Positions 945 to 63,307 of a stretch of 64,000 bases of DNA are shown here, piece after piece. The stretch covers positions 62,001 to 126,000 of the IMG/VR virus record IMGVR_UViG_3300030329_006583, one strand, 5' to 3'. The notes under the pieces are model-generated. The model searched no databases and was not told the DNA's origin. It saw only the letters and a list, made by a program, of their open reading frames with translations. The first letter of the stretch is position 1. Each line of letters opens with the position of its first letter. A program made the translations under genes and the position numbers.

Positions 945-3900
945 TTATATACCCCACATCGGGTTTTGGTGTATTTGTTCCACTTTATCTTTTTCCACCA
1001 ATGATATTGTTACAAAATATTGATCCGCTAAAAGATTGTCTTGACCAGCCCCAAATTGTGAATGTTTATAAACATATATAGTCTCATCCGGATAAATTGA
1101 TTCATATGCGCTAACCGCTATTGTGTCATCAATTAATACATTTTTTACATTTTCAATTATACCATCAGTCACATAGGATGTAATTACATCCGGATCATTT
1201 TGGGACTCACGAATTATAAATCTATCTACATCCACGGGAATAGCAAACACCCTATCAAATATCTTCATTGAAGTGGCTTGAGAAAATAGGTTGGTGGATT
1301 GAAAAGCAGCAGATGAAAGCATTAACTTAATATTGTCAAATTTCGCAGTAGTGAGATTCGTTGCCGGGCCTAAAACATTGTGATTTGCCAATTTAACCGG
1401 ATGCAATAATTTTGATTTATCAACTACACTGTTCCATTCTGGGGATACCCCTGGATATTCAGGATCTGCGTTGCTGCCTGCACCTTTGTGATTCTCACCG
1501 GCCAGTGCGGCAGGTATACTGGGTATATATACAGCTGTTGAGAATGGGTGTGCCATTAATGTAGAGGGAAAAATTTCACCGGTGGACACCATATTTGCAA
1601 AATCCTTCGGGGTACCTTGTTCACCAGGTGCCGGAAGTGCATTACCTTTTGCAACCTGCGTCAAAAATGCCACTGCATCAGTTGTCACATTTAAACCGTT
1701 TGAAAAATCATCATATGCATGTGTATATGTCATCTCATCCAATTCCATACCATACATCGAACGATAATACCTACCAAGTAATTCACTTACAATGTGATTT
1801 TTTAACAGTGATTGTTTATTGGTAGAACTCAACATATCCCAATATTGCTGAAACAAGAAATCCTTTTGATACATTGAAGTACCGGTTGGATTATTAAGTA
1901 AATTATTCCCCAAACCTGTTCCTGATACCCCACCAAAGTTATTGACAAAGTTAGGGGATCCACCTGCAAATGTGAAATCCGACGTCGGTTGTGTCATCGG
2001 CACAGTCAGGTAACGTGTAAATCTTGTATTTTCTAATATTTCATCAAAATTCTTGGGGGATAAAGCTGTAACGCCACCTGTAGGGGTGTCAAACCATTTA
2101 ATCGCAGGTAATTGACTATCAATTAAAAACATGTTCATATCAAACAAATAAACCAAAGGTTCAAACACCAAAGACGATCTTGCATGATCTTTACGATGAA
2201 CCTGTACTTGTACGATGGTTGAATTTGATCTCCGATAAGGTATTTCCTTAAAATCAATATCAGTTGCATCTATGTTTTGTTGCGTCCTTTGTAGCGAGCT
2301 CAACATGCCCGCGGGGATTCCTATACACATCACACGTAAATTTGCAGACTCCTTACCTTGAAAAGCCGGGAATAATCCGTTTTCACCAAACATGTTTCGT
2401 AATAATTTAAGATCAATATCATAAGGAGAATACCCAGCCCAATCACCATAATTAAGAACAGAACCCGGAGGTAACATGCCTGGTCGTACTGCGATTGATT
2501 CAAGTTCCCGGGTTCTCTTGCAAATCAAATTTGCTTGATGTGTGGTAATAGCTGCAAATTTAGATACATAATACCGGTGAAGCTCTGGGTGTGATGTTTT
2601 TAAAGTTTGTAGTGAAAGTTTTAAATTACCACCACCGGCTTCGGGGGTTGACGGAAATAAGCCTACTTCCCCACCAATAAAATCACCTGATACATTTGCA
2701 CCATTTAGTTCCGGAACACCCGTTGTGATCTGGGTATTAAAATTATTTGCAGCCGCATCAATGTTGTTGGCGTATGATTTAAGCAATGAAGTGGTGTATT
2801 TAATGAATGCATTTTCCCTCCTTGCCATCCGGTAAACGTCAGATAACGCATCCCATCCTGATAAAGTTGCATTTTGTAATACAGTATTAATCAATTCATT
2901 TCTTTCATATTTGTGTGTCGTGACAATTATTGGCTTGCCGTCATTGAGTTGATATTCCTCGCCATCCATGGTGTAATTATCAAAATTTTTATAAACCAAA
3001 GGATCTAGCGTAGATGTAGGGTATAAAAATTCAAACCAATCTGAATCCTGCAATTGGTTTTGGAAAAAACTTGCTATTGTAGATGGTGCAAAACTATCTT
3101 TTTTCATCCCTAAAATATCAATGTAGCTTTGTGCATCCATATCAAAAGCCTCAGATTGCTTGGGATCTTCTAGGTATGATAACATGAGTTTCATGTATAT
3201 AGCCAATTGCCTATTAACCTCAGTTTGAGCACGGACGGTTGTAACACCAGCGGCGCCTTGATATGAATCAATTACAATTAAATTGGCACCAATATATTGT
3301 GGTGCAGAGGATGCAAATCCACCTTCCTCATAAAAATTCTCATCATAATTTTGAAATAACTGAACACCTGCACCACCTTCAAAATAATCCCAATAACTCG
3401 TTCCAGGCCAAAACCCAGATACCCACTTTTTCATATAATCGGGATCAGCCTCAGGGGGTTGCAAATTATTTGCCGATAAGTAAGCAGCTTCCGCATCATA
3501 CTCATATGTGGTTGAAGCCTGCCCTTGCCCTTCAACATATACGGCGGGTACATAATTGCCCCCTAATTCAGTAAAAGTCCATGATGATGCCCCACCCAAT
3601 GATGGAACAAATGCAGAACCTGCTTCAAAAGCAAACTGGCCTTGTAACCTAGGGGATCCGAACACATCTTCCCAGGTTAGCGGTTGCCAAAAATTCCCGT
3701 ATTTTTTAATCATCTTATCTTGAAATTCATACAAAGCCGCGAGGTTGCCGTCCCATTCCTCCCCCCAGTATTCATATGGACCACCGGTTTTGTCGTTAAA
3801 ATTGTCATCATTCAACCACCCTTGATTTGGTACATAACCAAAATGTTCGTTGGTATCCGGTGTCAATGACCAGAGACACAAGTATGCAGATGCTTTTGAA

Positions 3901-6900
3901 GTAAGCCATGTCACCCACATCTCATACACAAACGCAGCCAAGGTATCTTCATCTAAACCATTATATATCGTTAAAATGGCACCGGTACCCTGTAACGATT
4001 GCGGTAAATTGCCGGCGGCGACGTTGGTTCCTTCAGGTGTTAATACGGAGTTACCTTTGTTTTTACGACTTAAATATGTGTATTTATCATCATTTTTACT
4101 AGCAACGTGATGTGCCTTGTCCTCTAACTCATCAAGATGTCTCCACATATTGTAACCAAAAGATCCGTAATCAAAAGGTGCAGAAGTATTCACTCCATCA
4201 AATGGCATTTGAAATCCTAACGCGCTTTTTAGCGATTCCTTTATCCAATTTATCCAATCCAGCGAAGCCCCCAAAAGAGGTTCATTTGTGGGCCAATCAC
4301 CCGGTTGCATTTGGTGGAAAAATGATTTCCAGGCCACATCAACCCCGCGGGTAGGTAGATCAAAATGTTCCCAAAACAACGGGCTTTGTGCCTTGCCAGG
4401 TGTAGGAGTAAACCCATCTCCAAATTGGATACCTTCCACTGGCTGATCGGGATCTGCGGTTATTTTTGTTGTCATTACCAAATTGTAATTGGCGTTAACA
4501 TTGGGTATGTTTGTGTTTTCCCCATATGTTTTTTGGGGGTATTTTTCCCCTGCGTGATACCCTAAAAGTGGACTCTTGTCTGCCCCACCTGCACCCATTG
4601 CACCCTTTAAAGGAGGGTGCATGGCATCGGTACCCATGGGTGGTGTTTCGCCCAATCCGGCAGCCCAATCTTCACCAACCCAAGTTGGAGCTGTATTTGC
4701 AACAGGTTCAAAATCAGCCGACATTAAATCATTGCCTATCATCTCAGCAACAGCTTTTGAAATATCATACAATAAATTCTCAACAGCTGCTTCAAATTCA
4801 CCACCAATAATTACATAATCTTGGCCCAAAGGATTAATATAAGCATCATCGATGTCACCATCTACATCATTTTGAGATGCCGCAACAATAATTGGCGTAT
4901 TGGAGTTCATTACCCCATATCCGGCACCGCTGGCTTGTGGAACACCATATCCCAACATATTTTTCTCTTGATCAAAATTAATGTTCTGTGCCGTTAAGGT
5001 GATATCTTCGGTACCGAAAATAAAAGGTGACGCATTATCCGGTGCATCAAATAATTCCTTCCTGAATTTAAGTGTTGCAAATCTCCATAACGTAAATATT
5101 TTATGAATAATATCAGGATGTTGATTTTCATGTTTGGCAATATTCAGGATTGCCAATAGAATCAAATTATCTTTTCGCACCCCTTCTACACTACTACCCC
5201 AATATAATTTACCTTCATTAATGATATTATTAGGTAAAACCTGATGTGCATTTGGCCACAGGACAGTATCACTAAAATGAAATAATTCCACACCCGTATC
5301 AGAATAACCTGGTACCGGGAGCCACCCACCGGGGAAATCATTGGGATCCGGCTTATGGGCACCAAACAACCATTCTGTCTGATCCATGTGACTACGATCA
5401 GAAATTGTGAACAAAAAATTGCTGCAATGCCTTAAAAATGGGCGTAATGTGTCGGTTGCAGAATTCACTCCATGGGTATGTTTGGAACCGTCTGGCTGAT
5501 CCCCGAATTTAAAACCAAAACCGGACGCGATATTAAGAACTTGATCTGATAAGTCGGCGGTGGTTTTCAGTTCTCCAACAAAATTTTGATAACGATCAAA
5601 TTCTAATAATGGCCTATCGTTTACCGGTGCAAACAATGGTTTGAAAAATATATCATTGGCAGCACCCGCAGGAGAAACCGGTGCTGCGGCGCCCCATGTA
5701 CTTGGGCGTGTTTCAAATGGGAGATATTTGCCATAATTACCAACCCCTCCAGGGTATTGTGAATCCACAATGTTACAAAAACTCATCAAAGTAAAAATAG
5801 GAGCTTTTGCTAGCATGTGCATCTCATCACCAGATGCTGTACCTCCCACAGTACCATATGTTAAGCCATTAGCGGCCAACAATAGTGAATGTGGGTTTTC
5901 TGAAAACATGTTGAATTCATTTGGCACACCCAATACCCTGGAAAATGGCTTATCATCTGTCAAAAAACGACCTTGGATATTGAATGACATTTGGTTGCCT
6001 GCGTCCAAAGATACTAGATTTGCAATTCCGGCAGATACAGAAAATTCACGTGACAATGCCATATTCAACAAAAATAATCGTTGTCTCACCTTATTACCGG
6101 CGGGTAGCATTGCCTGAAATTCATCCCAACCTGTTTTCCAATTTATAAGAACCGGAGAAGGTGATTTTTTATAAGAGAACTTTTCCAGTGAAAAAGAATG
6201 AGTGCCTTGAGGTGACATATGAGGATTAAGCCGATAATTTTCAATTAAATCAGACATACCTTCAATAGCCATGGGATTGATTCCCTCAAATTCAGTTCTC
6301 CACCCTGAATCTACACCTGCACCATAAAGTGGCGACAGTGGCGAATGTAATTTCATTGCACCATACATGTCGTGAACCAATTGTGCATAAACCTTGGTGC
6401 CCGGAAATGTTTTGAATGTTTCTTTTGGAAAACTTAAAAACGTTTCAAATATATTGCTGGGGGTAAAGGCTGATGTACTAAAAACCTCTGCGGGAATAAA
6501 ATTTGATTTATCATGACCGTCATATTTGGCCATTATATCTTCTTTCCACGTGTTGGTCCCGTTCTCGGCAGCGCCGGTCCACCCGCGTAAATTGGTGAGA
6601 TCCAATATGTCTTCAAGCCATATTATCCATGCCGTCAGGTATTGGGTCATCAAGGCCCAGTTTTTAGTTGCAGGTAATAACTTATTTTTAAAACCCCCTT
6701 CCAACTGATCTATGGTTATCTCATCCACACCCACAAATTCAATTTCATCACCGGTAATCTTGCATTTTTTTAATTTTTCATAACATTTCATCATGATATC
6801 GTATTTCAACTTACTTTGTTGCATACGATATTGCAATAATTCACGATAAGTTCGACGAGTGGGATTTTTGTTTTTCTCCAAAGATTGATCGTACGCCGCT

Positions 6901-7697
6901 TGGGATTGCGGATGGTTCATACTCAAATCTTCCAATGAAAGAAAATCCAATGACGCTATTATTTCCACTCGTGGACTAATGAATGGATTGGGTTTAGAAG
7001 GCATGCTCGAGCCAAACCCGGGTGGCGCGGCATCCCCTCCTGGCGGGGCATCCCCTCCTGGTGGGGGTTGGAAGGTGGTATCAGAAGGTATGTAATCCAA
7101 TATCGAGGTATCATTCCCGCTGTCAAAAGTTATGGCATCCTGGCTACCCGGAAGAGGTTGGGGATGAGACTTAAATCCATCAGTACCATAATTCCAAAAT
7201 TGAGTGATTTTGTTTTTACCCACTGCCGACGAATAAGGATCGGGTTTATCGGCAAAATCTTCATATGAATTATACATACCTGGAGTTGATGGGGAAATAT
7301 TGCCACCAGGTAACGGTGCATCAGGTTCCTTCTCCATGAATTCTTGCCAGGGTTGTGACGTCACTTTAGCTACCATAGAACCATTAGTTAATGTAGCCCG
7401 CTTGGAACCGTCTTGTTGCATATGCATAGGTGAAGCAGTTTTAAAGGCATTTGCTTCATTATCATCCGGTAACATGCTGGTTTCTGATTTATTAATCAAA
7501 GAACCATCCGTATCATTCCCTAGCCCAGGTGGGGTTAATTTCTCGTTGTATTGTTTGGTAACTGCCTGAGCCACCGTTTGCTCTTTGTCATCTATTCTTA
7601 ATTGAGCATCCAGTTCTAAATTAGCATCCGGTAATTCACTATTTGCCACCGGTTGCATATTAAATTTAACGTTTTGAAAAGAATTATCAGTTGCCAT
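945..7697 (-). CDS. Very large hypothetical protein (2250 aa), probably virion-associated
   Basis: Long uninterrupted ORF in the structural-gene block; no catalytic motif recognised. Confidence 0.75.
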   Translation of the reverse strand: MATDNSFQNVKFNMQPVANSELPDANLELDAQLRIDDKEQTVAQAVTKQYNEKLTPPGLGNDTDGSLINKSETSMLPDDNEANAFKTASPMHMQQDGSKRATLTNGSMVAKVTSQPWQEFMEKEPDAPLPGGNISPSTPGMYNSYEDFADKPDPYSSAVGKNKITQFWNYGTDGFKSHPQPLPGSQDAITFDSGNDTSILDYIPSDTTFQPPPGGDAPPGGDAAPPGFGSSMPSKPNPFISPRVEIIASLDFLSLEDLSMNHPQSQAAYDQSLEKNKNPTRRTYRELLQYRMQQSKLKYDIMMKCYEKLKKCKITGDEIEFVGVDEITIDQLEGGFKNKLLPATKNWALMTQYLTAWIIWLEDILDLTNLRGWTGAAENGTNTWKEDIMAKYDGHDKSNFIPAEVFSTSAFTPSNIFETFLSFPKETFKTFPGTKVYAQLVHDMYGAMKLHSPLSPLYGAGVDSGWRTEFEGINPMAIEGMSDLIENYRLNPHMSPQGTHSFSLEKFSYKKSPSPVLINWKTGWDEFQAMLPAGNKVRQRLFLLNMALSREFSVSAGIANLVSLDAGNQMSFNIQGRFLTDDKPFSRVLGVPNEFNMFSENPHSLLLAANGLTYGTVGGTASGDEMHMLAKAPIFTLMSFCNIVDSQYPGGVGNYGKYLPFETRPSTWGAAAPVSPAGAANDIFFKPLFAPVNDRPLLEFDRYQNFVGELKTTADLSDQVLNIASGFGFKFGDQPDGSKHTHGVNSATDTLRPFLRHCSNFLFTISDRSHMDQTEWLFGAHKPDPNDFPGGWLPVPGYSDTGVELFHFSDTVLWPNAHQVLPNNIINEGKLYWGSSVEGVRKDNLILLAILNIAKHENQHPDIIHKIFTLWRFATLKFRKELFDAPDNASPFIFGTEDITLTAQNINFDQEKNMLGYGVPQASGAGYGVMNSNTPIIVAASQNDVDGDIDDAYINPLGQDYVIIGGEFEAAVENLLYDISKAVAEMIGNDLMSADFEPVANTAPTWVGEDWAAGLGETPPMGTDAMHPPLKGAMGAGGADKSPLLGYHAGEKYPQKTYGENTNIPNVNANYNLVMTTKITADPDQPVEGIQFGDGFTPTPGKAQSPLFWEHFDLPTRGVDVAWKSFFHQMQPGDWPTNEPLLGASLDWINWIKESLKSALGFQMPFDGVNTSAPFDYGSFGYNMWRHLDELEDKAHHVASKNDDKYTYLSRKNKGNSVLTPEGTNVAAGNLPQSLQGTGAILTIYNGLDEDTLAAFVYEMWVTWLTSKASAYLCLWSLTPDTNEHFGYVPNQGWLNDDNFNDKTGGPYEYWGEEWDGNLAALYEFQDKMIKKYGNFWQPLTWEDVFGSPRLQGQFAFEAGSAFVPSLGGASSWTFTELGGNYVPAVYVEGQGQASTTYEYDAEAAYLSANNLQPPEADPDYMKKWVSGFWPGTSYWDYFEGGAGVQLFQNYDENFYEEGGFASSAPQYIGANLIVIDSYQGAAGVTTVRAQTEVNRQLAIYMKLMLSYLEDPKQSEAFDMDAQSYIDILGMKKDSFAPSTIASFFQNQLQDSDWFEFLYPTSTLDPLVYKNFDNYTMDGEEYQLNDGKPIIVTTHKYERNELINTVLQNATLSGWDALSDVYRMARRENAFIKYTTSLLKSYANNIDAAANNFNTQITTGVPELNGANVSGDFIGGEVGLFPSTPEAGGGNLKLSLQTLKTSHPELHRYYVSKFAAITTHQANLICKRTRELESIAVRPGMLPPGSVLNYGDWAGYSPYDIDLKLLRNMFGENGLFPAFQGKESANLRVMCIGIPAGMLSSLQRTQQNIDATDIDFKEIPYRRSNSTIVQVQVHRKDHARSSLVFEPLVYLFDMNMFLIDSQLPAIKWFDTPTGGVTALSPKNFDEILENTRFTRYLTVPMTQPTSDFTFAGGSPNFVNNFGGVSGTGLGNNLLNNPTGTSMYQKDFLFQQYWDMLSSTNKQSLLKNHIVSELLGRYYRSMYGMELDEMTYTHAYDDFSNGLNVTTDAVAFLTQVAKGNALPAPGEQGTPKDFANMVSTGEIFPSTLMAHPFSTAVYIPSIPAALAGENHKGAGSNADPEYPGVSPEWNSVVDKSKLLHPVKLANHNVLGPATNLTTAKFDNIKLMLSSAAFQSTNLFSQATSMKIFDRVFAIPVDVDRFIIRESQNDPDVITSYVTDGIIENVKNVLIDDTIAVSAYESIYPDETIYVYKHSQFGAGQDNLLADQYFVTISLVEKDKVEQIHQNPMWGI
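7029..7061. repeat. Short tandem duplication (GGCATCCCCTCCTGG x2, 18-bp period) encoding a PPGGDA linker
   Basis: Copies at 7029-7043 and 7047-7061; the protein reads PPPGGDAPPGGDAAPP. Confidence 0.85.
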
Positions 7698-7712
7698 GTA
7701 AACTACCGTTCA

Positions 7713-10517
7713 TTAAAATGTTCTATTGTATCCCTGGGTTGTTGCCAATAAATCAGGTTTTCTAGAATTGCCTTCTGTAACATTATCCAAATACCCAAGA
7801 TTTGCATTAATATCCACTGTCACACCTTGTGATTCATTGCTCATCATATAATTGTTAAAACACAATCGCACCGTATATTTCCTTTGCCCAACCAAACCTG
7901 ATAATTTAGTATCCACAAATTTATATTTTCCAATACCTTTTAAGAGGTGAACAACACCAACAACAGCCTTAGTACCCTGGTATTCAGCCAACACCTGAAC
8001 GTGATCAATATTGTCTGTATTTCCCACAAGATCCCAAGAAATTGTAACCAAACGAGTCAACCCTTGTGTTGAAGCAACAACATTTTTTATTTCCACCGGT
8101 TGTACCGGAATTTCAATATCTTTAATAATCTGATATGTAGTTTCACCCTCTAAAAAAGTTTGCTCTATGTTTTTAGAATCCTCCGTGTCATCAAAAAATT
8201 CTGATTCCATTGGTAAGGTGGCACTTTGTAATGTTTTTTTACTAAGAAATTTTGAACGCAAGGTTTTATATTTATTGAGGGTAAGCTGATCTTTCACCTC
8301 AGTGGGTGCATCAATTAACATATCAAAAATAGATGCCTTTAACAGAGTTATCACGTAACGATAGCGATGTCCAGGCTTTAAATTCGGTGCCCGATATTTA
8401 CTAACCTCAAAACTTTCTCCGGCATCAGTTGATTTATTTAATCCCAATTTTTTGTCATTAGTTACCCCATCCAAAAATTTTCCCAATGGTTGAGCACCAA
8501 AATTAATTGAAGTGCCCGTCGTTAAATTTATCCGGTCAATTTTTACGCGTAACAATGATTGAAATTTACCTTTATTTTTTTCAATATCACCCACAAAACT
8601 AGATAAAGCCTCATTTTCTTTAATGACACGTACTATTTCTTGGTACCCTTCCTTTAGGAAACCTGCCTCGGTTTCAAACTGTACCTTCGATGTTTTACCA
8701 ATTGTTGTAACCTTTGGTTCACTTACACTCAAACTTAACCCTTCATCTAAAAACACATTATGTGTATAATAAGCCACATTTGGTGCCCTATATAGACTTC
8801 CATCTTTAGCACTAAACACCAACGTATATCGATATGTGTGACCATGAATTAAATTGTTATGCATAAATGTTTTATTGTTTGCCATGGAATCCAAGATTTC
8901 AAAACCATAAGGCGAAGTGGTATCCTTTCCAACTAATGTCTCCCGACTAAGCAAACCTAATGTAAAATTGCGAGGCTCACTTTTTGGTAGTGCCGCACTA
9001 ACATCATCTGCCATCATATAACATCTGGTTGCAGGAGAACTTATGTTATGTGCTTCTACCTGAACCTCTGTTTGTGACACACGCTGGGTGGTTATAACGC
9101 AATGTCCAATTGTTGTTATATCATAAGCAGGAACCGCGGTATCATAAACATAACTTTTTGTTTTTGCTGTTCCAACAACCACTGCTGAGCTAAATGATTG
9201 ACTAAAATTACCATGTGTATCCTCGGCAATTGCCCGATATATTACAGTGGTACCCGGTTTGTTGTTATCTGTTAATACACCGTTGGTGGGAAAAGCCAAT
9301 GGCACTTTTTTTACAAATTTATAACCACCCACCCCGGTTCCATTAAAGTAGTTCATCAAATTAATGGTTTTTTTATAAATGCTGACAGATGTTGCACGGG
9401 TATCCGTTTGATTGAACGTTAATTTAACAACACCCCTTCGTAACACAGATGATTGTAATTCTGGTTTTTCCAAAACAAAATTTTGCGATATAGCACCAAT
9501 ATTTAAAGAATGAGGTAACGTAATTGTATCCTTTACCACACCGTCATCATCCAATACTTCAAAGGTAAAATAAATAACTTCCGGTGACATTTGATCCGGA
9601 TAATTTATGGTGATAGGTAATTTAAATGTAGTAAAAGTAAGCCCTAGATTTCGAGTAACCAAGGTTTGTTCCATGGTATCAGCAGCACCCATAGAATCCC
9701 GGGCAATTAATACACCATAATATGATTTAGACCCAATAGGTAATAATGATGTTAAATAAGGATCTACATCAATATTGTCTTTGGGCATCCTCATAATGGA
9801 ATCTTTCACATTGGAATAAAATGAAGGCATAAATTGATGTGAATTATACATATGATGAGGTATAATACGACCCATTCTCGCCTGAACCGGATCTACCGGA
9901 AATGCATACGAAACAGCAGAAGCGGGATCCAATCCATCTAATACAGAATATAAAGCCAATCCCCTATTTCCGGATTGGGGGATAAAATTACTTCTACCAC
10001 CCCCGATATAAGATACTGTTTGAACTACATGTGTTTTGGAGTCTTTTTTAGCGCTCATCATGGTTGCATTTTTATCCACAATTTGCGTTACCATCGCCTG
10101 TTGCATAAAAGGATTTCTTATGTCAACGCCATCTTTTTCATATTGAGAACATTCAAGTGAAGAAACATTTGATAATAAACTACAATTTACCTCACCTACC
10201 TCTGTATTCTTTTTTTGTTTTCCAGAGCGTAAAAATTCATTTGCCCTTTTTTTAATCACTTTTGCCAATTGACGTTTAGATACAGATTTTATATTAGACT
10301 GGCGTGAATTACTAGGGTTTGTAAGGTGAGCCTTTACTTTAATAAAATAAGCAGAATTTTTTACTGCCTCTCTAATATTAACTGAAAATGTTAATTCATA
10401 AACATTGCGATAACCTGCAACCTCTCTGGATTTTGTCATGACAATTTCTGTCACAAAAGATTCAGGAATATTTAAAATATTTCCCCTTTCACCAATATTT
10501 CCGCTTATTATTGACAT
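7713..10517 (-). CDS. Hypothetical structural protein (934 aa), beta-sandwich/FN3-like segments
   Basis: Long ORF with repeated FN3-like ends (LIHGHTYRYTLV, LKPGHRYRYVITL, VTISWD...RKYTVRL); lies in the virion block. Confidence 0.6.
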   Translation of the reverse strand: MSIISGNIGERGNILNIPESFVTEIVMTKSREVAGYRNVYELTFSVNIREAVKNSAYFIKVKAHLTNPSNSRQSNIKSVSKRQLAKVIKKRANEFLRSGKQKKNTEVGEVNCSLLSNVSSLECSQYEKDGVDIRNPFMQQAMVTQIVDKNATMMSAKKDSKTHVVQTVSYIGGGRSNFIPQSGNRGLALYSVLDGLDPASAVSYAFPVDPVQARMGRIIPHHMYNSHQFMPSFYSNVKDSIMRMPKDNIDVDPYLTSLLPIGSKSYYGVLIARDSMGAADTMEQTLVTRNLGLTFTTFKLPITINYPDQMSPEVIYFTFEVLDDDGVVKDTITLPHSLNIGAISQNFVLEKPELQSSVLRRGVVKLTFNQTDTRATSVSIYKKTINLMNYFNGTGVGGYKFVKKVPLAFPTNGVLTDNNKPGTTVIYRAIAEDTHGNFSQSFSSAVVVGTAKTKSYVYDTAVPAYDITTIGHCVITTQRVSQTEVQVEAHNISSPATRCYMMADDVSAALPKSEPRNFTLGLLSRETLVGKDTTSPYGFEILDSMANNKTFMHNNLIHGHTYRYTLVFSAKDGSLYRAPNVAYYTHNVFLDEGLSLSVSEPKVTTIGKTSKVQFETEAGFLKEGYQEIVRVIKENEALSSFVGDIEKNKGKFQSLLRVKIDRINLTTGTSINFGAQPLGKFLDGVTNDKKLGLNKSTDAGESFEVSKYRAPNLKPGHRYRYVITLLKASIFDMLIDAPTEVKDQLTLNKYKTLRSKFLSKKTLQSATLPMESEFFDDTEDSKNIEQTFLEGETTYQIIKDIEIPVQPVEIKNVVASTQGLTRLVTISWDLVGNTDNIDHVQVLAEYQGTKAVVGVVHLLKGIGKYKFVDTKLSGLVGQRKYTVRLCFNNYMMSNESQGVTVDINANLGYLDNVTEGNSRKPDLLATTQGYNRTF

Positions 10518-10518
10518 C

Positions 10519-12066
10519 TTACTCAGAACCTAATAAAAATTTATTATTGGGATTAATTAAATATTCATCAAATATTTCGGCACCCGTTGCTGCATTTCCT
10601 ACTGAACTATTCAAAATCATTGTAAAAATATTCGCAAATCTTAAAGAAACTGCGCCAGTATTATCTTTATCCTGATACATTTTTCCTACATAAAACAAAC
10701 GCTGTTGATTCCCATTGGGATTACCATCCGATAATTCCCCTGCATCAATTACAGCTAATTTATTTATTTCCGCCTTATCCCTAGGGAATTCAAATATTTG
10801 CATAATTAAATTATTGTTTTTTGAAGTCTCGGGAAATGTCACCAAATTACCTATAATTTGTTTATTGCTTTTGGGATTATCGCCGGCTTTTGCTTTAAGC
10901 CTATCAATTACTTGGCTCAATTTTGTCTCACGCTGTTGGTATTTTGTTGCCGCCTCTGCAGGCCATTGCCACTGATAACACAAACGTGCCGCTGCAAAAT
11001 CTTTTTCATTTAAGCCTTGAACACCCAATGCCACTGCACCTATTTTATCCAATTCTGTTGCAATATCACCTTCCTTATAAGGTGTGATTCCTCCGCCAGT
11101 ATATTGTTTCACCTCATCGGGAGCATGAAATCCATCTTTAAAAAGAGATACATTTTCCAGAACACCGTTGGGTAAGCCGTCAATTTTAAAAGCACCATTA
11201 GGTAAAAAGTGTTCCAAAATGCCTAACATAACCACTAAGCCTAGACCATCCAAAAGACCGAGATCATCACTGTCAAGCAGTTTTACCACAGCGGCAGGTA
11301 ATCCCATAAACTCAGACATTTTTTTCATTGCTTGTTTGAAATCCATTTCCGGTAATTTCAAACCTGTCACTATGAAAGGTAGGATACGTGCCATTTGTGC
11401 ACCGGGTGGGAGTTTGTTAATGGGTGGCAAATACAGGAAATTCGGAACATGGGTAAATCGATGATCCTCCCAAACCCTGGGCAGCGTACTTCTTTCTAAC
11501 GTTTGTGGTACATCAGGTGAAGCCGAAGATTCATCTGTGACTGCTTTGGGTTCTGGGAGTGTATCAAAATTAATACTTCCTGTGCTGATTATAAACTTAT
11601 TATTGATGGCAAACGGATCAATGCTGGCCAAAAATCGCTGTGACTGATAATTCCCTTCCAGCCCTTTTATAAATTCATTTGGCATGCCCCCATTCAGTGG
11701 GTTAATGTTAACGCCTGTTGGAAATGCCCCAGTAAGGGAGAATTTATTTAATAAATTCGGCAACAATTCAAAAATACTACCTGAATATAATATGGGCGGT
11801 GCCTTAAGTGCTGTGATTAATCCATTGTGATCTGTTTCAATACACAACGTATCCTGAAACCTTTGCATGGCTTCAAAATAAATACGATCCCCTGCATCAC
11901 CCGCAACATCAGAAGCGGTTGGCGCCAACGCACTATCATAAAATGCATGTCGGTCGGTAAATGTAACATACCTAAATTGCATATGACCGGATGCGGCCTG
12001 GAATCTGCCGGGGGTGGTGATCAATGTATCCATCACCCTTTGTTTACTATTTAATATACCTGCCAT
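10519..12066 (-). CDS. Putative baseplate/tail-collar-type structural protein
   Basis: Likely start MAGILNSK at 12066; the track start at 12120 overlaps a terminator. The N-terminus DTLITTPGR...FRYVTFTD resembles tail-fibre/collar attachment N-termini. Confidence 0.55.
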   Translation of the reverse strand: MAGILNSKQRVMDTLITTPGRFQAASGHMQFRYVTFTDRHAFYDSALAPTASDVAGDAGDRIYFEAMQRFQDTLCIETDHNGLITALKAPPILYSGSIFELLPNLLNKFSLTGAFPTGVNINPLNGGMPNEFIKGLEGNYQSQRFLASIDPFAINNKFIISTGSINFDTLPEPKAVTDESSASPDVPQTLERSTLPRVWEDHRFTHVPNFLYLPPINKLPPGAQMARILPFIVTGLKLPEMDFKQAMKKMSEFMGLPAAVVKLLDSDDLGLLDGLGLVVMLGILEHFLPNGAFKIDGLPNGVLENVSLFKDGFHAPDEVKQYTGGGITPYKEGDIATELDKIGAVALGVQGLNEKDFAAARLCYQWQWPAEAATKYQQRETKLSQVIDRLKAKAGDNPKSNKQIIGNLVTFPETSKNNNLIMQIFEFPRDKAEINKLAVIDAGELSDGNPNGNQQRLFYVGKMYQDKDNTGAVSLRFANIFTMILNSSVGNAATGAEIFDEYLINPNNKFLLGSE

Positions 12067-20757: not shown

Positions 20758-23700
20758 CTATGAACTATTGGGAACAATTGTTATAACCCATGTATTTTCT
20801 GTGTCAGATATTTCCACAAAATTTTCATACACCTTTTGAGGTGCAGCACCGGGACCAACATCCTCATAACCTACAACTTTATCTTTCACGCGTAACCTAG
20901 GTGGCACAAATATATCTGCCCAATCATATCTAAATTTTGCCCTCTCCAACATGTGTGATTCAATAGTAAATTGCACACCTAAAAAGTCTGTCTTTCGCGG
21001 TAGTAATCTTTCAATGATTATACCAATGGAATCATCAAACCACCGATAAAATTCAAAAAACTCTTTAATTTTAATTCGAGACGTCAATCTATTAAAATAA
21101 ATGTCTCTTAAATTCTCTAATGTAGGATATTCATCTGCAAACAAGTATTCCGTATTGCCTATAATGTTGTTCCATTCATCAAGAGTTGAAAACATGTTTA
21201 TTATATCTTCATTTAAAGCCTGAACAAATGAATTTTCTACAATAAAACGCGTGTCATCCTGTGGTTCTTCGCTTCTTAAGACATTGTATGTCGGTGTTGC
21301 AGAGGCATTATTCTCTATTTCATCTGCCCGATTAGAAAAACTTCTTATCCTCACTTTGTTTTCAGCGCTTCTTTCATCAAATTTTGGATCAATATATGAA
21401 TAATCAAACCTCTGTGAACGAAACGCCAACCTGTTGGGTTCAAAGCCGGTACCCGACATTGCGTACATTACTTTGGTACCATGGCCGTCCTCTGTAGAAG
21501 GACGCCAAGGAACGCCGCGGCACCCGCTAGCAAAATTCTGGCTATAATCAAATAAAACCACGTTGCCGCCGGCGGAGGCAGACTTTATTAATTGATCACC
21601 GCTAACATCCAATCTTAACCTTTCAAATGATCCGGTGGGAGTGGTGGTAAAGTTAAAGTTGACAAAAGGATTATTAACCCCTAGTGATTTAGGATTCCTG
21701 GTGCGCTCCTTAAATTCTGCATCTGTTAAAGCCTTGCTCCAGAATCGGATTTGAGAAACTTCACCGCTAAACCTAGTTTGGCGTGAAAGAGAGGGCACCA
21801 CGGGATCGTCTTGATTTAAATACAATCCCCTAGCATCTACATATAGGCTTTGGCTTCCGATGGTAATAAACGATCCCGAAGTATTACTATCATATTTTTT
21901 ACTTAATGCATCTCTTTCAGGATTTAATGATGCATATTTATCTGTCCATGGCAAAAACAATGTTGAGCTCATGTGATATTCGGTAATGCTTCCATAACTT
22001 TGCTTTGCAGCCTTAAGAAAATACGAAGAAGATATTACCGATCCAATTTCTTCACCGCACCTTCTCCCCCAACCGATTTTCCAGGTGTTACCATCAAAAA
22101 TATTTACACCTGTTAACACCATTTCCAGTGTAGGCATTTGTATAGAGCCAGGTGCAGCTGTGTCAATCCTGCCTGGGCGACCAAACAAAAACAAAGATGA
22201 TGTGGTCACATTTCCCACTTGACCCACGGTACCTGAAATTGCTATTAAATTAAACATAACACCGTGTTGACCACTTAAATTACTATTTGTGCCGGTTACA
22301 TTAAGCCTCATTAAACTCTGGGTTGCAAAATGAGTTGAGCTAGTAGGGATACTGGTAACGTCAAACCTATATAATGCTTCATATGTAAAAGAACCAGACG
22401 TAAACAATCCATCGTCAGGATTTCGAGAGATACCGTGTAAAAAAGTATTATGTGAAACATTTGGGCCACCAGATGGTGCATATTCATATGAACGCACCAT
22501 AGGCCCTTGAGGGGAAGGCATACCGACTTCAACCCTGGAAGCTGAAAGAAATGGGGAAATAATGAATGGCACATTAGGATGTACGCCCAGTGTATCTGTC
22601 GTAGCTGCAGTGGGGTTGGGTGCCAACGTTGCAGAATAATTAAGCATTCCTAAATGATCTGTTTTTAAACGCCGACTATCCTGTATTTTTGTTGATTTTG
22701 GACCACCGAATTCTCTAATTCTAAAATTATTATCCGGATTTAAACCAATAGATCTTATTAGCGCCTTGATTGAATGCACTGTGCCTTTACTGGTTATAAT
22801 TTCTTGAATATTGGTTAAAACTCTGCGCCATAATTCATTTTGCACATACCGTAATCCAAATTGACTATATGAAGGATCTGCCAATAAATTTTCACCATCC
22901 AAATATTGCTTCAATCCTGCATTAGAATAAAAACTCGGTAGCTGAAACCCATAATGATTTCCTAAAAATGTCAAAAACTGATCTGCGATTGTATTGTCTT
23001 TATCGTAATCCACACTCAACAAATCTGAAAAGTGATCTGTATACATTTTTAATTCATCAAAATATTTTCCCCACATTAACATCATTAATGACATTAATTG
23101 TGAAGATCCTAATTTTCCGCCCCCTGGAAAACTAATAGAACCTGTAGAATAAGGTTTGTCTAATTCACCCTTTATTGTAGAAAAACCTTCTGTAAATTGA
23201 GATTCCATCAAATAATGCGGTGGTATTAATTTTGTAATGAGGTTTGGATTATTTGCGTCATAAACACTGGCAGAAAGTAATAAATTTTTATTTAAATTCA
23301 TTACATTATCAACATAAGGAAAGAGTATCGGATTTAATTCAGCTCTTTCGTTTTTAATGGGCATTTTACCGGTTAAACCTATAACCTTTTCTACCTCACG
23401 TAAAGAACTAGTAAAATTAGTAATTGTTGAATGTAACGATTTTCCTGAACTATCTAAAACTAAATTATTGTTAGAATATGAACCACTAGGCTCATTAAAC
23501 TTAAAATATAATCTTAAATCTGGTGAAGAATAGACGTTTTTATAAAGAAATTCTTTTTGTTTAGTTTTTTCAATTACTGTATTATAAAGACGAAATTCAT
23601 CAATTGCACCTGACAATGTTTGTTTGGGTATAAAGTATTCTGGTTCCAGTGTAGTTGCATTTGTACCTGATATTACCAAACTTCCCGAACCTATAATAAA

Positions 23701-31053: not shown

Positions 31054-31422
31054 TCATCCACCTATTTGGTTAAATAAATCATCAGGATCAATTTGTTGTG
31101 CCTTTTCTTCGGATTTTGCTATTAATTCAGCCAACCTGAGAATCTGTTCATTTGATTTACACATTCTTTCTATATATTTTGTTAATGTGGATCCCAATGT
31201 TACATGTTCGGCTGTACCTGTTTGCATTTGCTGAAAGGCATCAGTAAATAACATTCCTGCATTTTCACGATCCATAACGGCATTGTGATATATTTCTTTC
31301 CAGAGGATTTTTTTCTTATCATCTATGGAATTTATATTATCTAATAATTCATTAAAATCCTCAACTTTCTCAGTTGTTGTTTTTAACTTATCCATGGCAT
31401 TAGATATTTTCTCTTCACTCAT
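31054..31422 (-). CDS. Helical hypothetical protein (122 aa)
   Basis: Coupled ORF (1-nt overlap with the sigma gene) with coiled-coil character. Confidence 0.7.
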   Translation of the reverse strand: MSEEKISNAMDKLKTTTEKVEDFNELLDNINSIDDKKKILWKEIYHNAVMDRENAGMLFTDAFQQMQTGTAEHVTLGSTLTKYIERMCKSNEQILRLAELIAKSEEKAQQIDPDDLFNQIGG

Positions 31423-32147
31423 TACAATACCCCTGAATTTAATTTTTCTTTAACAATATTTTTATAATGTTTTCTAATAGATGACATTGCAACAGATAAT
31501 TGTTTTGGATTTAAACCCGAAATCTCCCTAACATATATAAAAACCGCGCGTTTGTTTAGAAAATCCAAATCATCAACTCTCTCAAATACTGTGATAATTG
31601 CATTAATACATATTTTTTCTTTGCTTCCTGTTACTTTCTTTTTAACCTTTTGTATTGTGTCAAGTATTTCATTTCTAGCATTGGCATTAATTAATAGTTC
31701 ATCAGGAGAGGGCACAAAATCAAAATTTGATAAACATCTTTTATCACCCGCAGACATGCCGTTAATGTCATCTAAGCTTACGTTTTTAATTGCCAACTTT
31801 TTATTTTTTCTGGAATTCATGATCAACCAATTTTTGGCTACCACGTTAAAATACGAAAATGCCTTTGTTCCCCTATCTGGTTTCCATTTATCGATTGTTT
31901 CATATAAAAATGTAACACAATCGCTTTTTAATGAATGGTAATCATCTTGTGGGCCCAAAAATCCATACACAAAAATTAAATTTTCAGCCAACTTATCAAA
32001 TGCAACATATATTTTATCAACATAGATTTTTTTTCTCTCTTCTTCATCTGTACTTTGTTGATATAACTCTATATTTTCCTGTGTTTCTTTATCAAAATAA
32101 AGTCTACCACCTGATTTACGTCGCCTGATCTTCTTTTTTCCCTTCAT
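31422..32147 (-). CDS. Phage sigma factor, sigma70 region 2-containing (gp55-like late sigma)
   Basis: DCVTFLYETIDKWKPDRGTKAFSYFNVVAKNWL matches sigma region 2.2-2.4 (..DKFDPxRG.KFSTY..). It has a basic N-terminus and sits directly upstream of the structural operon. Confidence 0.75.
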   Translation of the reverse strand: MKGKKKIRRRKSGGRLYFDKETQENIELYQQSTDEEERKKIYVDKIYVAFDKLAENLIFVYGFLGPQDDYHSLKSDCVTFLYETIDKWKPDRGTKAFSYFNVVAKNWLIMNSRKNKKLAIKNVSLDDINGMSAGDKRCLSNFDFVPSPDELLINANARNEILDTIQKVKKKVTGSKEKICINAIITVFERVDDLDFLNKRAVFIYVREISGLNPKQLSVAMSSIRKHYKNIVKEKLNSGVL

Positions 32148-59142: not shown

Positions 59143-60441
59143 TTACAATATACTAGTAGCTAGAGAAGCAATTTCAGATCTGTGCCCATTTATTAAATGT
59201 ACATGACCGGTTAACATAGATTCTTTGAATTTTTGTACCACAATTGTTAGGCCATTAGATCTTTTATCAATGTAAGGTGTATCCACTTGATCTGTATCAC
59301 CCAATAAAACTATTTTAGAACCTTTACCGATTCTGGTAATTATTGTTTTTAGTTCATGAATGGTGGCATTTTGTGCTTCATCAACAATTACAAATGAATC
59401 ATTAAATGTTCTTCCTCTAATATATGACAGAGGGGAAATTTCTATTTCACCCTTTTGACGCATACTTTCAAAATACGATATATCGTTAAATGCGTGTCTA
59501 AAATTATCTATTAATGGTGCCATCCATGGTGCCATTTTTTCATCAACATCACCAGGTAAATAACCTAAATCCCTACCTACCGGTTCAATTGATCGTGTAA
59601 CTACTATTCTTTTATATTTTTTTTTAAATAAACCTGATAGTGCACTCATGAGTGTAATAAATGTTTTACCAGATCCTGCAATTCCAGTAATTGTGACTAG
59701 CTGTATATTGGGATTATTTAATAATCCGACTGCAAATGCTTGTTCTTTGTTTTTAGGTTCAATCCCTAAATCACTGTTAAAAGAAGCCAATCGATTTTTT
59801 TTAATATATCCGTTTTCATATATGCCTAATAAAGATTTGCCAAGCGGCGATTTTCCAATAATAAATTGATTTTCAAATACTTTTTCATCACCATTATATT
59901 GTATTTTTCCATGTTCGAAAAACAGATCAACATCACTATCAGAAAGTTCCAGCTGTATTTTACCTGAATATGCTGTATCTGCAGATAATTCTAGATGATC
60001 CTTCCAATAGTCTTCACCAATTAATCCTAATGCATCACATTTAACACGAAGGTTTATGTCTTTTGTAACAACTTTAACAGGGGTATTTTTAAATTCTAAG
60101 GCTAATTTAAGTGCACTACCCAATATTTGATTGTCGGCTAATTCTATGTCCAAACCATCAGGGATATTATTTCTAGAGTACTTGGTTTCAATTCTAATGG
60201 TCTGATCAGATTCCGGAATAGTTACGGCCTTATCCAATCGCCCAATGTCTCTAAGGCTATCTAGATAGCGATTGACATACCTGGCAGATTCACCTAATAA
60301 ACCAGGCTTATTTTTAAATTTGTCTAATTCATCTAAAACGGGAAGTGGAAGAACCACGTCATTTCCGGGGAATGAATGAATAGCTGTCATATCATAAAGA
60401 AGAACACTAGTGTCAACCACTAATACTTTTCTAGAGCTCAT
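59143..60441 (-). CDS. phoH: PIN-domain PhoH-family ATPase (PhoH2/YlaK type)
   Basis: PIN motifs VVDTSVLL, ELD, DNQI and TKDINLR; Walker A GIAGSGKT; LGYLPG, YIRGRTF, DEAQN, TRIG and GDTDQ. Likely start at 60441. Confidence 0.93.
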   Translation of the reverse strand: MSSRKVLVVDTSVLLYDMTAIHSFPGNDVVLPLPVLDELDKFKNKPGLLGESARYVNRYLDSLRDIGRLDKAVTIPESDQTIRIETKYSRNNIPDGLDIELADNQILGSALKLALEFKNTPVKVVTKDINLRVKCDALGLIGEDYWKDHLELSADTAYSGKIQLELSDSDVDLFFEHGKIQYNGDEKVFENQFIIGKSPLGKSLLGIYENGYIKKNRLASFNSDLGIEPKNKEQAFAVGLLNNPNIQLVTITGIAGSGKTFITLMSALSGLFKKKYKRIVVTRSIEPVGRDLGYLPGDVDEKMAPWMAPLIDNFRHAFNDISYFESMRQKGEIEISPLSYIRGRTFNDSFVIVDEAQNATIHELKTIITRIGKGSKIVLLGDTDQVDTPYIDKRSNGLTIVVQKFKESMLTGHVHLINGHRSEIASLATSIL

Positions 60442-60496
60442 GCAATTTCCTTTCGTGTACATTTAACGTATACACAATATTGTTCTTAATATAAAT

Positions 60497-60808
60497 ATGG
60501 AAACGTTTAATATGAAGCATAAAATAAATTTAATGAATTTATCAAATGGGGAAAAAGAAAAGATTGATTGTGATAGTACGTGTTATGAAATTTGCAAAAA
60601 TTATGATGTAGAGTGTAATCAAACACTTTGCAATTATTGGATTAACGATAATAAAAACAATAATTGTGTATTTCTTAGTGCTAATAACGGTGCTAAAACA
60701 TTACAACAGATTGGTGACATATTTGGCATTACAAGAATGCGCATATGCCAAATTGAAAAAAATGCCTTGAAAAAGCTTTGTAAAAAAAGTAAAAAATACG
60801 GGTATTAA
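60497..60808 (+). CDS. Stand-alone sigma70 region-4 HTH protein with Cys-rich N-terminus
   Basis: KTLQQIGDIFGITRMRICQIEKNALKKL matches sigma region 4.2; six Cys precede it. It is the only credible plus-strand gene. Confidence 0.85.
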   Translation: METFNMKHKINLMNLSNGEKEKIDCDSTCYEICKNYDVECNQTLCNYWINDNKNNNCVFLSANNGAKTLQQIGDIFGITRMRICQIEKNALKKLCKKSKKYGY

Positions 60809-61884
60809 ATACCACCCAACAAAGTAATTGCAACCAATCCGGGAATTCCTTCTTTTACGTAAACACCTGAAAATAGTGTGTTTGTTCTTCCGCCAACATA
60901 AGAAAATGCCGATTCCAGTCTTTTGCTCACCATTGGATCACCTGCCATTTCACTATTTGCAATCAATAACAAAACACCGGTCTCTGTGTTGCCTGTTGGT
61001 CCGGGACAAGGGGAAGATTTAAGAGAACCTTGGAATACACTAGCACCTAAATCAGATTTTGAAACATCCCTAATAACAGTACTCCCAATTACCATTCTAC
61101 CATTAACACCCAAGCATTTTTCTAAATCCTTTGAATCAAATGTTTGAATAGGTGATGGTTCATCTGCTAATTTAAAAACCTGACTCAATAATTTTGCAAA
61201 GTTTTTATTAGCAGCTGGGAACATATTTAACATCCCAACCTTTCCTCTTAGAAGTTGTAACTGTTTTTCATTATCAATTACAATATGAGGATAATCGCAG
61301 ACATCTTCTAGAACAGATTTATAATTTGTTGAAATTGTGGGATTTAATAATTCTTGTGCAGTAGGTTTTGAAACAACATAAACCACTTTACCAGAAGCCT
61401 CTGACGATGAAAGGTATCTACTAATAGAGCCATGTAATTCGGCACATGCACTCCCGGTACCGCCACCACCACCGGCTAATACAAATACCCAATCCACTTT
61501 CCCTATTTTGGATCTTAATGCATCTTCAACCATGGTACTATTATTGCGTAATACCTCTTTCCCCAAAACAATATCTTTTCCGACCCCATCTGCACCAGGG
61601 ATTACTAACACATGCTGATCTTCTACGCCGGTAGGTAAATCCTTGAGTGTGGTGTTAACAAGCAATGTTTTATTAAACCCTAGATCCATAAATGCTTTTG
61701 CTAATTTTCCACCACCACCACCAACTCCGATAAAAGCGCAATTAATGGCACTAGTAAATGTATTTTCCGGAAGAAGCTGATCATCCGCAATGGGTTCATC
61801 ATCATATGCTTCCACAAAATCAAATTCATCCATCACATCTGGTGGATTGATATAATCGTCATCCTGTTTTTTCTTTTTGCTCAC
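60805..61884 (-). CDS. FtsZ/tubulin-superfamily GTPase (phage tubulin-like)
   Basis: FIGVGGGGGK, NTT..DL, GVGKD, AGGGGGTGS signature, IDNEK and T7-like FDSKD. GTG start at 61884, 6 nt after AAGGAG. Confidence 0.9.
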   Translation of the reverse strand: MSKKKKQDDDYINPPDVMDEFDFVEAYDDEPIADDQLLPENTFTSAINCAFIGVGGGGGKLAKAFMDLGFNKTLLVNTTLKDLPTGVEDQHVLVIPGADGVGKDIVLGKEVLRNNSTMVEDALRSKIGKVDWVFVLAGGGGGTGSACAELHGSISRYLSSSEASGKVVYVVSKPTAQELLNPTISTNYKSVLEDVCDYPHIVIDNEKQLQLLRGKVGMLNMFPAANKNFAKLLSQVFKLADEPSPIQTFDSKDLEKCLGVNGRMVIGSTVIRDVSKSDLGASVFQGSLKSSPCPGPTGNTETGVLLLIANSEMAGDPMVSKRLESAFSYVGGRTNTLFSGVYVKEGIPGLVAITLLGGI

Positions 61885-62006
61885 GATACGCTCCTTCTTA
61901 TTTTTGAGTGGAAGATTATAATTAGTCATAGATTTTACTACTGTTGACGGCATATGTCCCTTATTCCACCTTCATATATATACGGTAATTCCTTAAATTA
62001 ATTAAG

Positions 62007-62405
62007 TGGAGACGCCGGGAATCGAACCCGGGTCCTAAATACCTCCAACATCATGTCATTCACAAGGTTAGCCATTTTACTCTAAACCGGCAAAGTAACT
62101 CGAATTATCCCATCCCATATCGAGTATCTGGGATCCACCTGTATAAAAAGGTAATCACTTATTTCTAACTGAAAACCTTTTTTACCACCAGGGTAACCAT
62201 TCAGCCCTATTTACTCGAAGGCCAATCGAGTTTTGCTGGTCTTAGTTAAAAAGGCTCCCAGCAGCCTCGGATTAAGCAGCTAGTGCGTAATCGTTGTAAG
62301 TGTCAGTGTTGGCACTTATTAAGTTCAGCGTTTTTACAGAGACCTTCGCTGCCCTCTGCCTTGCACATAATGGTTTTGATACTCAGTCGAAACCTTTACA
62401 TCCCC
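62007..62405 (-). ncRNA. ssrA: tmRNA, one-piece, 399 nt; tag (A)ANTDTYNDYALAA
   Basis: 5' end GGGGATGTAAAGGTTTCGAC and 3' end GGACCCGGGTTCGATTCCCGGCGTCTCCA. The acceptor stem has G3:U70 and discriminator A. Tag ORF at 62313-62272 follows AATAAGT. CCA is not encoded. Confidence 0.96.
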
Positions 62406-62420
62406 AATATTAATTTAAAT

Positions 62421-62606
62421 CTATTTTCTAGATTTTTCTTCACTAATTGTTAATTTTACCAGATCTTGAGCTTCCTTTTTCAATAATCTTAAACCCTTTC
62501 TAGCTCTTACACCGGCTGATGCATTTCCACTAGCATTTTTATGTACGTCTAACTCAAGACTCTCTACCAATACCTTTATTTCGTTCCACTTATCAATGAT
62601 TGACAT
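62421..62606 (-). CDS. Histone H1-like (Hc1-family) small DNA-binding protein
   Basis: LVESLELDVHK..GNASAGVRARKGL matches the Hc1 core GNKAAGxRARK. AGGAG SD present. Confidence 0.8.
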   Translation of the reverse strand: MSIIDKWNEIKVLVESLELDVHKNASGNASAGVRARKGLRLLKKEAQDLVKLTISEEKSRK

Positions 62607-62842: not shown

Positions 62843-63307
62843 TTACTCCACCGCCCTTCTATCTATAAATGATTCTATCTTAAATTTATCTTCTTTTTCA
62901 AAAACCAACATTTTACCGGTGATTTCATTTTCAACGTCATCTTTTGTCAAAACTACAAAAGATCCCCATCTTTTATTATCTATAATAAATTTAACATTTT
63001 CATAAGTGGGCAAATCACATTTATACGATTCTAGAATTTCAACTACACCTTTATCCAAAGTATATTTTATATCAATAATGGAGGATTGTGATTTTAAATC
63101 ATCCTTCCCAGCCATAATATGAGATTTACAAATATCAAATATTTTATGTATCACCCCACAATTATTACATGTAACATATTTTGGAATGACTGTATCACTA
63201 TCATCAATAATAGAAAACACAACGAATTTATGATATGCAAAATTCTCTTTATTCCTAAACTGAGGTAATACACAATGACATTCAATTATGTGTTTAATCC
63301 CATCCAT
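62843..63307 (-). CDS. Hypothetical Zn-ribbon-like protein (154 aa)
   Basis: CHC and CNNCGVIH..C motifs. Confidence 0.7.
   Translation of the reverse strand: MDGIKHIIECHCVLPQFRNKENFAYHKFVVFSIIDDSDTVIPKYVTCNNCGVIHKIFDICKSHIMAGKDDLKSQSSIIDIKYTLDKGVVEILESYKCDLPTYENVKFIIDNKRWGSFVVLTKDDVENEITGKMLVFEKEDKFKIESFIDRRAVE

Follow-up and report, generated by a model that had tools for sequence, protein, structure and literature searches.

Sigma factors whose function is divided between two polypeptides are known from phages and mobile elements, namely B. subtilis SigO-RsoA, Tn916 Sig7-Sig8, SPO1 gp33-gp34 and T4 gp55-gp33 (bioRxiv 10.64898/2026.10.01.756105), with one of the two polypeptides carrying the region-4-like -35 module. 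SigO-RsoA and Tn916 Sig7-8 are described as dividing the sigma between region 2 and region 4, and the Sig7-8 pair is expressed together. The two genes are linked or co-transcribed for SigO-RsoA, Sig7-8 and SPO1 gp33-34, but not for T4 gp55/gp33. T4 gp33 is a small late co-activator that takes the place of region 4 on the beta flap; it is not known to be homologous to region 4 or to bind DNA, and it carries a clamp-binding tail, as does gp55.

Here we analyse a small gene within a 64,000-nucleotide stretch (the window) comprising bases 62001-126000 of a single 267,118-bp viral contig from a marine metagenome (IMGVR_UViG_3300030329_006583). The contig has 40% G+C, 331 of its 353 retained ORFs lie on the minus strand, and it represents an uncultivated jumbo phage whose nearest isolates, Flavobacterium phage immuto and Microcystis phage Mel-JY01, are only remotely related (28% identity through a gp55-like protein). 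A preliminary description proposed that this gene encodes a stand-alone, Cys-rich sigma region-4 protein, acting either as partner of a 241-aa gp55-like sigma in a split sigma system or as a metal/redox-sensing beta-flap competitor of host sigma region 4. The observation itself holds, with the corrections given below, whereas the interpretation is only partly supported: the idea of a stand-alone region-4 piece of a multi-part phage sigma system fits the evidence, but the named partner does not.

A stand-alone protein matching only sigma region 4.2

The ORF at 60497-60808 (+) encodes 103 aa and is the only plus-strand ORF retained in the window. It is divergent from a PIN-PhoH gene (59143-60462, -) and converges on a tubulin/FtsZ-family gene (60805-61953, -), with its TAA stop (60806-60808) overlapping the stop of the latter inside TTAA at 60805-60808. 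The true start is probably M6, the ATG at 60512, since the gene-called product has 98 aa and this layout matches that of a relative (G007); by the same comparison, the probable start of phoH is its second ATG, at 60441.

The protein scores above the curated Pfam cut-off for Sigma70_r4 (PF04545; 39.5 bits against 24.1, E 3.9e-10, and 40.3 bits in a six-frame genome search), but only residues 67-94 (60695-60778, +) match, on profile positions 21-48 of 50, which corresponds to the region 4.2 helix-turn-helix (HTH). Thus, the whole domain, with both 4.1 helices plus the 4.2 HTH, is not present. Indeed, a family profile searched against the PDB hits only the region 4.2 of primary sigma factors (E. 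coli RpoD and SigA of Thermus, Mycobacterium and Staphylococcus), with about 45-50% identity over the HTH and the hydrophobic core positions kept. In the AlphaFold model (mean pLDDT 82), the top Foldseek hits are all sigma A region 4, over the HTH only (31-39 columns, rmsd 1.4-2.6 Å, probability up to 0.98), with E values of 0.19 or worse because the match is short, and a wide VIA search found nothing for the whole protein. Within the recognition helix, TRMRICQ (residues 79-85) aligns with the TRERIRQ of RpoD, such that R80 and Q85 align with two of the -35-contacting residues, R584 and Q589, of E. coli sigma70, whereas E585 is replaced by Met and R588 by Cys, both replacements being invariant in the family. 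The C-terminal segment that follows in intact region 4 is absent.

In place of the first helix of region 4.1 there is a Cys module (residues 29-57; 60581-60667, +), followed by a short helix at 58-62 in the model. Although six Cys precede the HTH, as the preliminary description stated, only four (C29, C40, C45 and C57, spaced C-x10-C-x4-C-x11-C) are invariant in 48 aligned family members, with W48 near-invariant, whereas C25 and C33 are not conserved. The invariant positions in these 48 members are C29, C40, C45, N56, C57, L69, G73, T79, R80, M81, R82, C84, Q85, E87 and K88, while the C-termini are variable. C84 remains invariant in relatives that lack the module, so it is not a ligand of that site. 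The module is modelled with pLDDT of about 90, but neither Foldseek against the PDB nor the wide VIA search matched its fold. Zinc binding is inferred only, and, besides the suggested metal/redox sensing, four invariant Cys are compatible with a plain structural zinc site.

The family is stand-alone and, in our reading, phage-only, with 13 homologues in a large protein collection, 227 in IMG/VR and 1271 representative clusters at E<=1e-3, nearly all of 37-172 aa and viral. Nothing matched in an isolate-phage collection, and the only hits in 185,579 species genomes were six MAG contigs of unrelated taxa, which are probably mis-binned phage DNA. The best 150 of the 1271 representatives show no fusion of the Cys/4.2 module to sigma regions 2-3, and most of the odd-length hits inspected look like chimeric or frame-broken calls. 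Two relatives carry a canonical TRERIRQ helix, on contigs too short to show context.

Gene order and putative promoters

The small gene is a lone reversed gene, flanked on both sides by opposite-strand genes, in 54 of 68 loci. It lies next to phoH in 74 of 80 related loci, whereas the tubulin gene is present in only 17 of 80 and is thus not part of the conserved unit. Upstream of the small gene we infer a bipartite promoter (60455-60483, +) with a -35-like GTGTAC (60455-60460), a 17-nt spacer and a -10-like TATTGT (60478-60483). TGTACA is 10-fold enriched upstream of homologues (16 of 55 loci against 1.6 expected), where a related TGTAAA also occurs, and the pattern [TGC]TG[TA][AC][AC]-N16-19-TAnnnT is found in 25 of 55 loci, against 4 on the opposite strand and a mean of 6 in shuffles.

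This divergent arrangement is the classical layout of a regulator and its target, raising the possibility that the protein is an autonomous regulator in the manner of GerE or LuxR C-terminal domains, which are free-standing, of similar size and of the same general HTH class as sigma domain 4. In this view, the HTH, stabilized by a Cys4 zinc module, would bind an operator in the shared promoter region and control the divergent pair without being part of any sigma. The conserved TGTACA/TGTAAA element, as well as an imperfect inverted repeat at 60455-60476, read by eye, would be in line with such a role. However, no LuxR/GerE or other regulator family appears among the Pfam hits at E<=1, where only sigma region 4 matches, and the Cys module is not a feature of the GerE/LuxR family. 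In addition, TGTACA is not clearly enriched in other intergenic regions (6 against 4.4 expected, and 7 against 2.7), so that no regulon beyond the gene's own upstream region is apparent, and the element fits a -35 with 17-18-nt spacing to TAnnnT at least as well as an operator. Relatives without the Cys module have just two helices, which is hard to see as a self-sufficient DNA-binding domain, and this reading does not explain why the sigma-70-type factor of the clade lacks exactly this piece. We consider it unlikely, although less so than the other alternatives below.

Two further promoter-like signals were recognized in this phage. The first is a strong class, CGTGCAAA-N-TGGTATAAT, with 17 exact GTGCAA-N16-18-TATAAT sites, all on the sense strand and none in a reversed-pattern control, lying mostly upstream of small ORFs with strong ribosome-binding sites at 138-241 kb. 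These sites carry a perfect extended -10, TGGTATAAT, and look like early promoters read by host sigma70. The small protein is not a likely reader of their -35-like element, since relatives G001, G002, G003 and G007, which have the same invariant recognition helix, have no such sites, and G007 uses TTCTGTAAAAAA instead, although a shared TG[CT]AAA core keeps the idea from being fully excluded. The second is an ATATTTA element, which occurs 15 times in upstream regions against 2.5 expected, lies 3-41 nt upstream of 16 genes, has no -35 partner and resembles a T4-style late promoter. A TATAAATA-like string at the 5' end of the small ORF initially suggested a T4 late promoter for the small gene itself. 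However, TATAAATA is not enriched (17 sites genome-wide, 1 in the 60 nt upstream of a gene) and, read on the other strand, the string is ATATTTAT (60491-60498, -), which matches the phage's own late-type motif and points at phoH, with the same element at the same place in G007. The small gene therefore appears to be driven by a sigma70-type promoter that overlaps a late-type promoter for phoH, as inferred from sequence alone; no RNA run was found to hold the locus.

The presence of extended -10 promoters, which depend less on region 4, together with the similarity of the HTH to primary-sigma region 4.2, would be compatible with the proposed competitor of host sigma70 region 4: made early, the protein would occupy the beta flap, or titrate factors that bind region 4, and thereby shut off -35-dependent host promoters while sparing phage promoters with extended -10 elements. 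T4 AsiA and gp33, which act at the region 4/flap interface, provide a phage precedent. However, the parts of region 4 that form the flap-tip groove, namely the long first helix of 4.1 and the segment after the recognition helix, are missing or replaced, and the DNA-facing residues (T79, R80, M81, R82, C84, Q85, K88) are invariant, which suggests DNA reading rather than mere occupancy. A single complex prediction of the small protein with the E. coli beta flap (831-1057) and Zn scored 0.01 without returning an answer, and counts neither for nor against. On present evidence, we regard a competitor as improbable.

The 241-aa gp55-like sigma is not specifically supported as partner

The 241-aa protein (31422-32147, -) belongs to a very large family of more than 1800 proteins. 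Its region 2, previously described as clear, is weak by sequence (Pfam E 0.072, below cut-off; PHROG 'late sigma' E 0.036), but its AlphaFold model superposes on sigma domain 2 (Z about 9, rmsd 2.3-2.7 Å over 93-97 residues) and contains a C-terminal helical domain. No region 4 is detectable by sequence, and neither hhalign nor a PDB profile search linked its C-terminal domain to region 4. Rather, the model aligns from about residue 14 to 241 with whole sigma factors up to their C-terminal ends, so it probably has its own C-terminal domain. Most homologues end in an FDIF/VDLF-type tail, and the gene directly downstream (31054-31422, -) encodes a conserved protein of about 120 aa (122 aa here) without Pfam or PHROG hit, which ends in ..DPDDLFSQI... 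This layout resembles T4 gp55 plus gp33 plus clamp, and the traits of gp33 fit the 122-aa protein, a candidate gp33-like co-activator by analogy, better than the small protein, which has an HTH with conserved DNA-facing residues and no such tail, leaving no obvious role for the small protein there.

In addition, the late-type ATATTTA sites have no -35-like partner element for a region 4.2 to read, and the small gene has a putative sigma70-type promoter rather than a late-type one. Co-occurrence, which had been suggested as a check, was observed in every sufficiently complete genome of the clade examined (4 of 4 and 4 of 5 large contigs), but is uninformative because everything in the clade co-occurs. 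The more distant phages immuto and Mel-JY01, which have gp55-like homologues, gave no tblastn match to the small protein. We therefore consider this pairing, by which the two proteins would form a late sigma analogous to T4 gp55 plus gp33, the least likely of the readings discussed here.

A truncated sigma-70-family protein with complementary domain content

A six-frame search of the whole genome for sigma domains identified a second sigma outside the window, at genome position 229725-230507 (-), 107 kb from the small gene and on the opposite strand. This 260-aa protein matches Pfam r1.2, r2 (77 bits) and r3, but only positions 1-18 of r4, corresponding to region 4.1, and PHROG 351 'RNA polymerase sigma factor' at E 4e-55, and is thus, like the HTH of the small protein, of the primary-sigma type. 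It ends about 28 residues after RLRFGI, with no recognition helix. Its gene, like the small gene, sits behind a putative sigma70-type bipartite promoter, not a late-type one. The truncation is a family trait rather than damage, since all 120 closest homologues, out of more than 7800, end 17-41 residues after the RLRFG motif without a TRERIRQ-type helix, as do 70 of 77 IMG/VR loci, whereas the seven full-length ones carry a canonical TRERIRQ-type (or SRERVRQ) helix. The coverage of the r4 profile by the two proteins is therefore complementary, with positions 1-18 in the sigma and 21-48 in the small protein.

The clearest case is seen in relatives G017 and G019, where the sigmas end at ..MRFGLTEDKESENGNA (12 residues after MRFGL) and ..MRFGIED, respectively. 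In exactly these two genomes the small protein, still divergent from phoH, lacks the Cys module and consists only of a basic tail and the HTH, SLQEIG..TRMRICQ(I/L)EK... When aligned to a full-length phage sigma, the two pieces abut at the 4.1/4.2 loop. A two-helix fragment can hardly fold alone, and orphan 4.1 helices are the obvious thing for it to pack against. In the genome studied here, by contrast, the fit is not a simple jigsaw, because the truncated sigma keeps a tail of about 28 residues that may mimic the first HTH helix and the small protein has its own 4.1-like helix.

Nine of ten relatives' contigs that carry the small protein also carry the truncated sigma, the miss being 38% complete, and this genome carries both. 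Of five large contigs chosen for the truncated sigma, four carry the small protein; the miss (G015) is 87% complete and also lacks the gp55-like gene, which lies 29 kb from the small gene in this genome, so a missing segment is likely. Three fragments that are 44-73% complete lack the small protein, whereas all seven genomes examined that are at least 90% complete and carry the truncated sigma have it. This co-occurrence is, however, confounded by shared ancestry, as the gp55-like sigma and a further protein (orf303-like) show the same clade-wide pattern, and the only genomes with a full-length sigma and no small protein (G020 and G021) are an outgroup that also lacks the gp55-like gene and thus provide no clean contrast. 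Moreover, the two genes are never neighbours: no truncated-sigma gene lies within 10 kb of the small gene in 68 loci, and the reverse also holds; nor do the two lie within 2.5 kb of each other in 80 loci.

The orf303-like protein (92-108 aa, starting MSMPKG..) represents another candidate for completing the truncated sigma. It is encoded directly after the truncated sigma in all 15 such loci read by eye, was flagged by a crude pattern scan in 41 of 71 truncated loci and is absent from the outgroup. By eye it has an HTH-like stretch, but it is not recognizable as a region 4.2, with no Pfam, PHROG or PDB support and no significant hhalign match to the small-protein family. It could be the real completer, a third subunit or a regulator.

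Discussion

We suggest that the small protein is the detached, -35-reading region 4.2 of a phage sigma-70-family factor split inside region 4, with the 260-aa truncated sigma as the other piece. We assign this reading a probability of about 0.4, the alternatives discussed above being less likely, with some weight remaining for explanations other than these. What the analysis establishes is the sequence anatomy, the family distribution and the gene order; the association of the proteins with each other and with RNA polymerase, DNA recognition, metal binding and the timing of expression are all inferred. In this model, both genes would be expressed early in infection from sigma70-type bipartite promoters, and the truncated sigma would bind RNA polymerase core through regions 2-4.1. 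The small protein would dock on its orphan 4.1 helices, helped in most family members by the four-Cys, probably zinc-binding, module and a short 4.1-like helix, whereas in the minimal relatives the HTH alone would suffice. Docking would complete domain 4 on the beta flap, and the altered recognition helix (TRMRICQ instead of TRERIRQ) would then read a phage-specific -35 element, although no promoter class with a conserved -35 element that the invariant helix could read was found in our searches. Separate and oppositely oriented expression of the -35 reader would give the phage a second control point over this sigma, and the overlapping late-type promoter for phoH could shut the small gene off when late transcription starts.

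Compared with SigO-RsoA and Tn916 Sig7-8, the break here would lie between 4.1 and 4.2 of a sigma that keeps regions 1.2-4.1, with the genes about 107 kb apart and usually with a Cys4 module on the small piece. We found no paper describing such an arrangement, which, given the limited literature searched, is weak evidence of novelty. A broader and more tentative possibility is that a large, cosmopolitan clade of marine jumbo phages runs a three-tier transcription programme, the middle tier of which would use such a split sigma, with the core-binding and -10-reading body and a detachable -35-reading HTH, usually carrying its own zinc module, encoded far apart and under separate control. Promoter specificity would then be assembled in trans and could be switched by the supply of the small subunit, with the orf303-like protein perhaps a further subunit or a regulator.

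Sigma domain 4 is defined as one folded unit that both docks on the beta flap and reads the -35 element. A natural system in which the two halves of this domain are separate gene products would show that -35 recognition can be supplied in trans to a sigma body, adding a new design to the short list of split sigma factors as well as a ready-made orthogonal AND gate for synthetic circuits. It would also help to explain how an abundant, uncultivated group of marine jumbo phages, with thousands of homologues of the truncated sigma and of the gp55-like sigma, and hundreds of the small protein, in ocean metagenomes, times its gene expression.

Genes and RNA elements around the small gene

A phage-encoded tmRNA is located at window positions 62004-62405 on the minus strand, where it lies between the tubulin-like gene and the Hc1-like gene. 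ARAGORN gives the tag peptide of this RNA as ANTDTYNDYALAA, and the Rfam model RF00023 scores 128 bits over its full length. The adjacent gene at 62421-62606 (minus strand) encodes an Hc1 histone-H1-like protein (Pfam E 3.8e-10), whereas the gene at 62843-63307 (minus strand) encodes a conserved 154-aa Cys-rich protein with no family. These two genes are syntenic with the small gene, which encodes the Cys-rich sigma region-4.2 protein, in 59 and 72 of 80 loci, respectively. Just beyond the end of the window, at genome positions 127777-132212 on the minus strand (positions 3780-8212 of the extracted locus L081), we observe a trio of PrkA kinase, SpoVR-like and DUF444 genes, namely the bacterial PrkA/YeaH/YcgB-type set, which is followed by a NUDIX protein and a helicase. 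The trio is conserved in 34-42 of the 80 related loci.

In one subclade, represented by loci L016, L047, L064 and L080, perfect or near-perfect hairpins of different sequence, identified by eye, abut the start codon directly upstream of the small gene, as exemplified by AGGATTGTCTAA/GTTAGACAATCCT in L016. By visual inspection, the differences between loci appear to be compensatory, which suggests a conserved 5' structure. In addition, two relatives of the small protein (P0381 and P0394, from loci L271 and L272) have the same Cys module but a canonical TRERIRQ/TRERVRQ recognition helix, and one of them carries a long C-terminal extension; the contigs of both are too short to show context.

The locus of the truncated sigma-70-family gene

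Outside the window, at genome positions 229402-230507 on the minus strand (contig C1; positions 5402-6507 of locus L183), a sigma-70-family gene truncated after region 4.1 (260 aa) is followed, with an ATGA overlap, by a gene for a conserved 108-aa protein that starts MSMPKG and is referred to here as orf303-like. The orf303-like protein has an HTH-looking stretch, but no family match. It follows the truncated sigma in every such locus that was read by eye and is absent from the outgroup with a full-length sigma. Within the early region next to the truncated sigma, at genome positions 228007-232424 (minus strand), visual inspection reveals a peptide-deformylase-like ORF and a GroEL-like ORF of 536 aa, and a GapR-like DNA-binding protein also lies there (Pfam E 1.1e-5).

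Candidate promoter classes and the gp55-like sigma

The 122-aa protein encoded downstream of the gp55-like sigma, at window positions 31054-31422 (minus strand), is conserved (about 120-128 aa) and ends in (I/V)(D/N)PDD(L/I)F(S/A)(Q/K)I, while most gp55-like homologues end in FDIF/VDLF. These ends look like clamp-binding tails, as in T4 gp33 and gp55, although the 122-aa protein has no family hit and the comparison is by analogy only. An ATATTTA(T) element is enriched 3-41 nt upstream of many genes across the window, for example those ending at 12066, 28542 and 60462 (minus strand), and has no -35 partner. We consider this element a candidate late promoter for the gp55-like sigma; the late motif of T4 is TATAAATA.

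A distinct, strong promoter class, CGTGCAAA-N-TGGTATAAT, is found at 138-241 kb of the genome, outside the window, with one exact site inside the window at 23581-23609 (minus strand). The class comprises 17 exact GTGCAA-N16-18-TATAAT sites, all of which are on the sense strand. An analogous class, TTCTGTAAAAAA-N-TGGTATAAT, is observed with 14 sites in the related phage genome G007. Thus, the -35-like element differs between related phages, while the extended -10 is the same.
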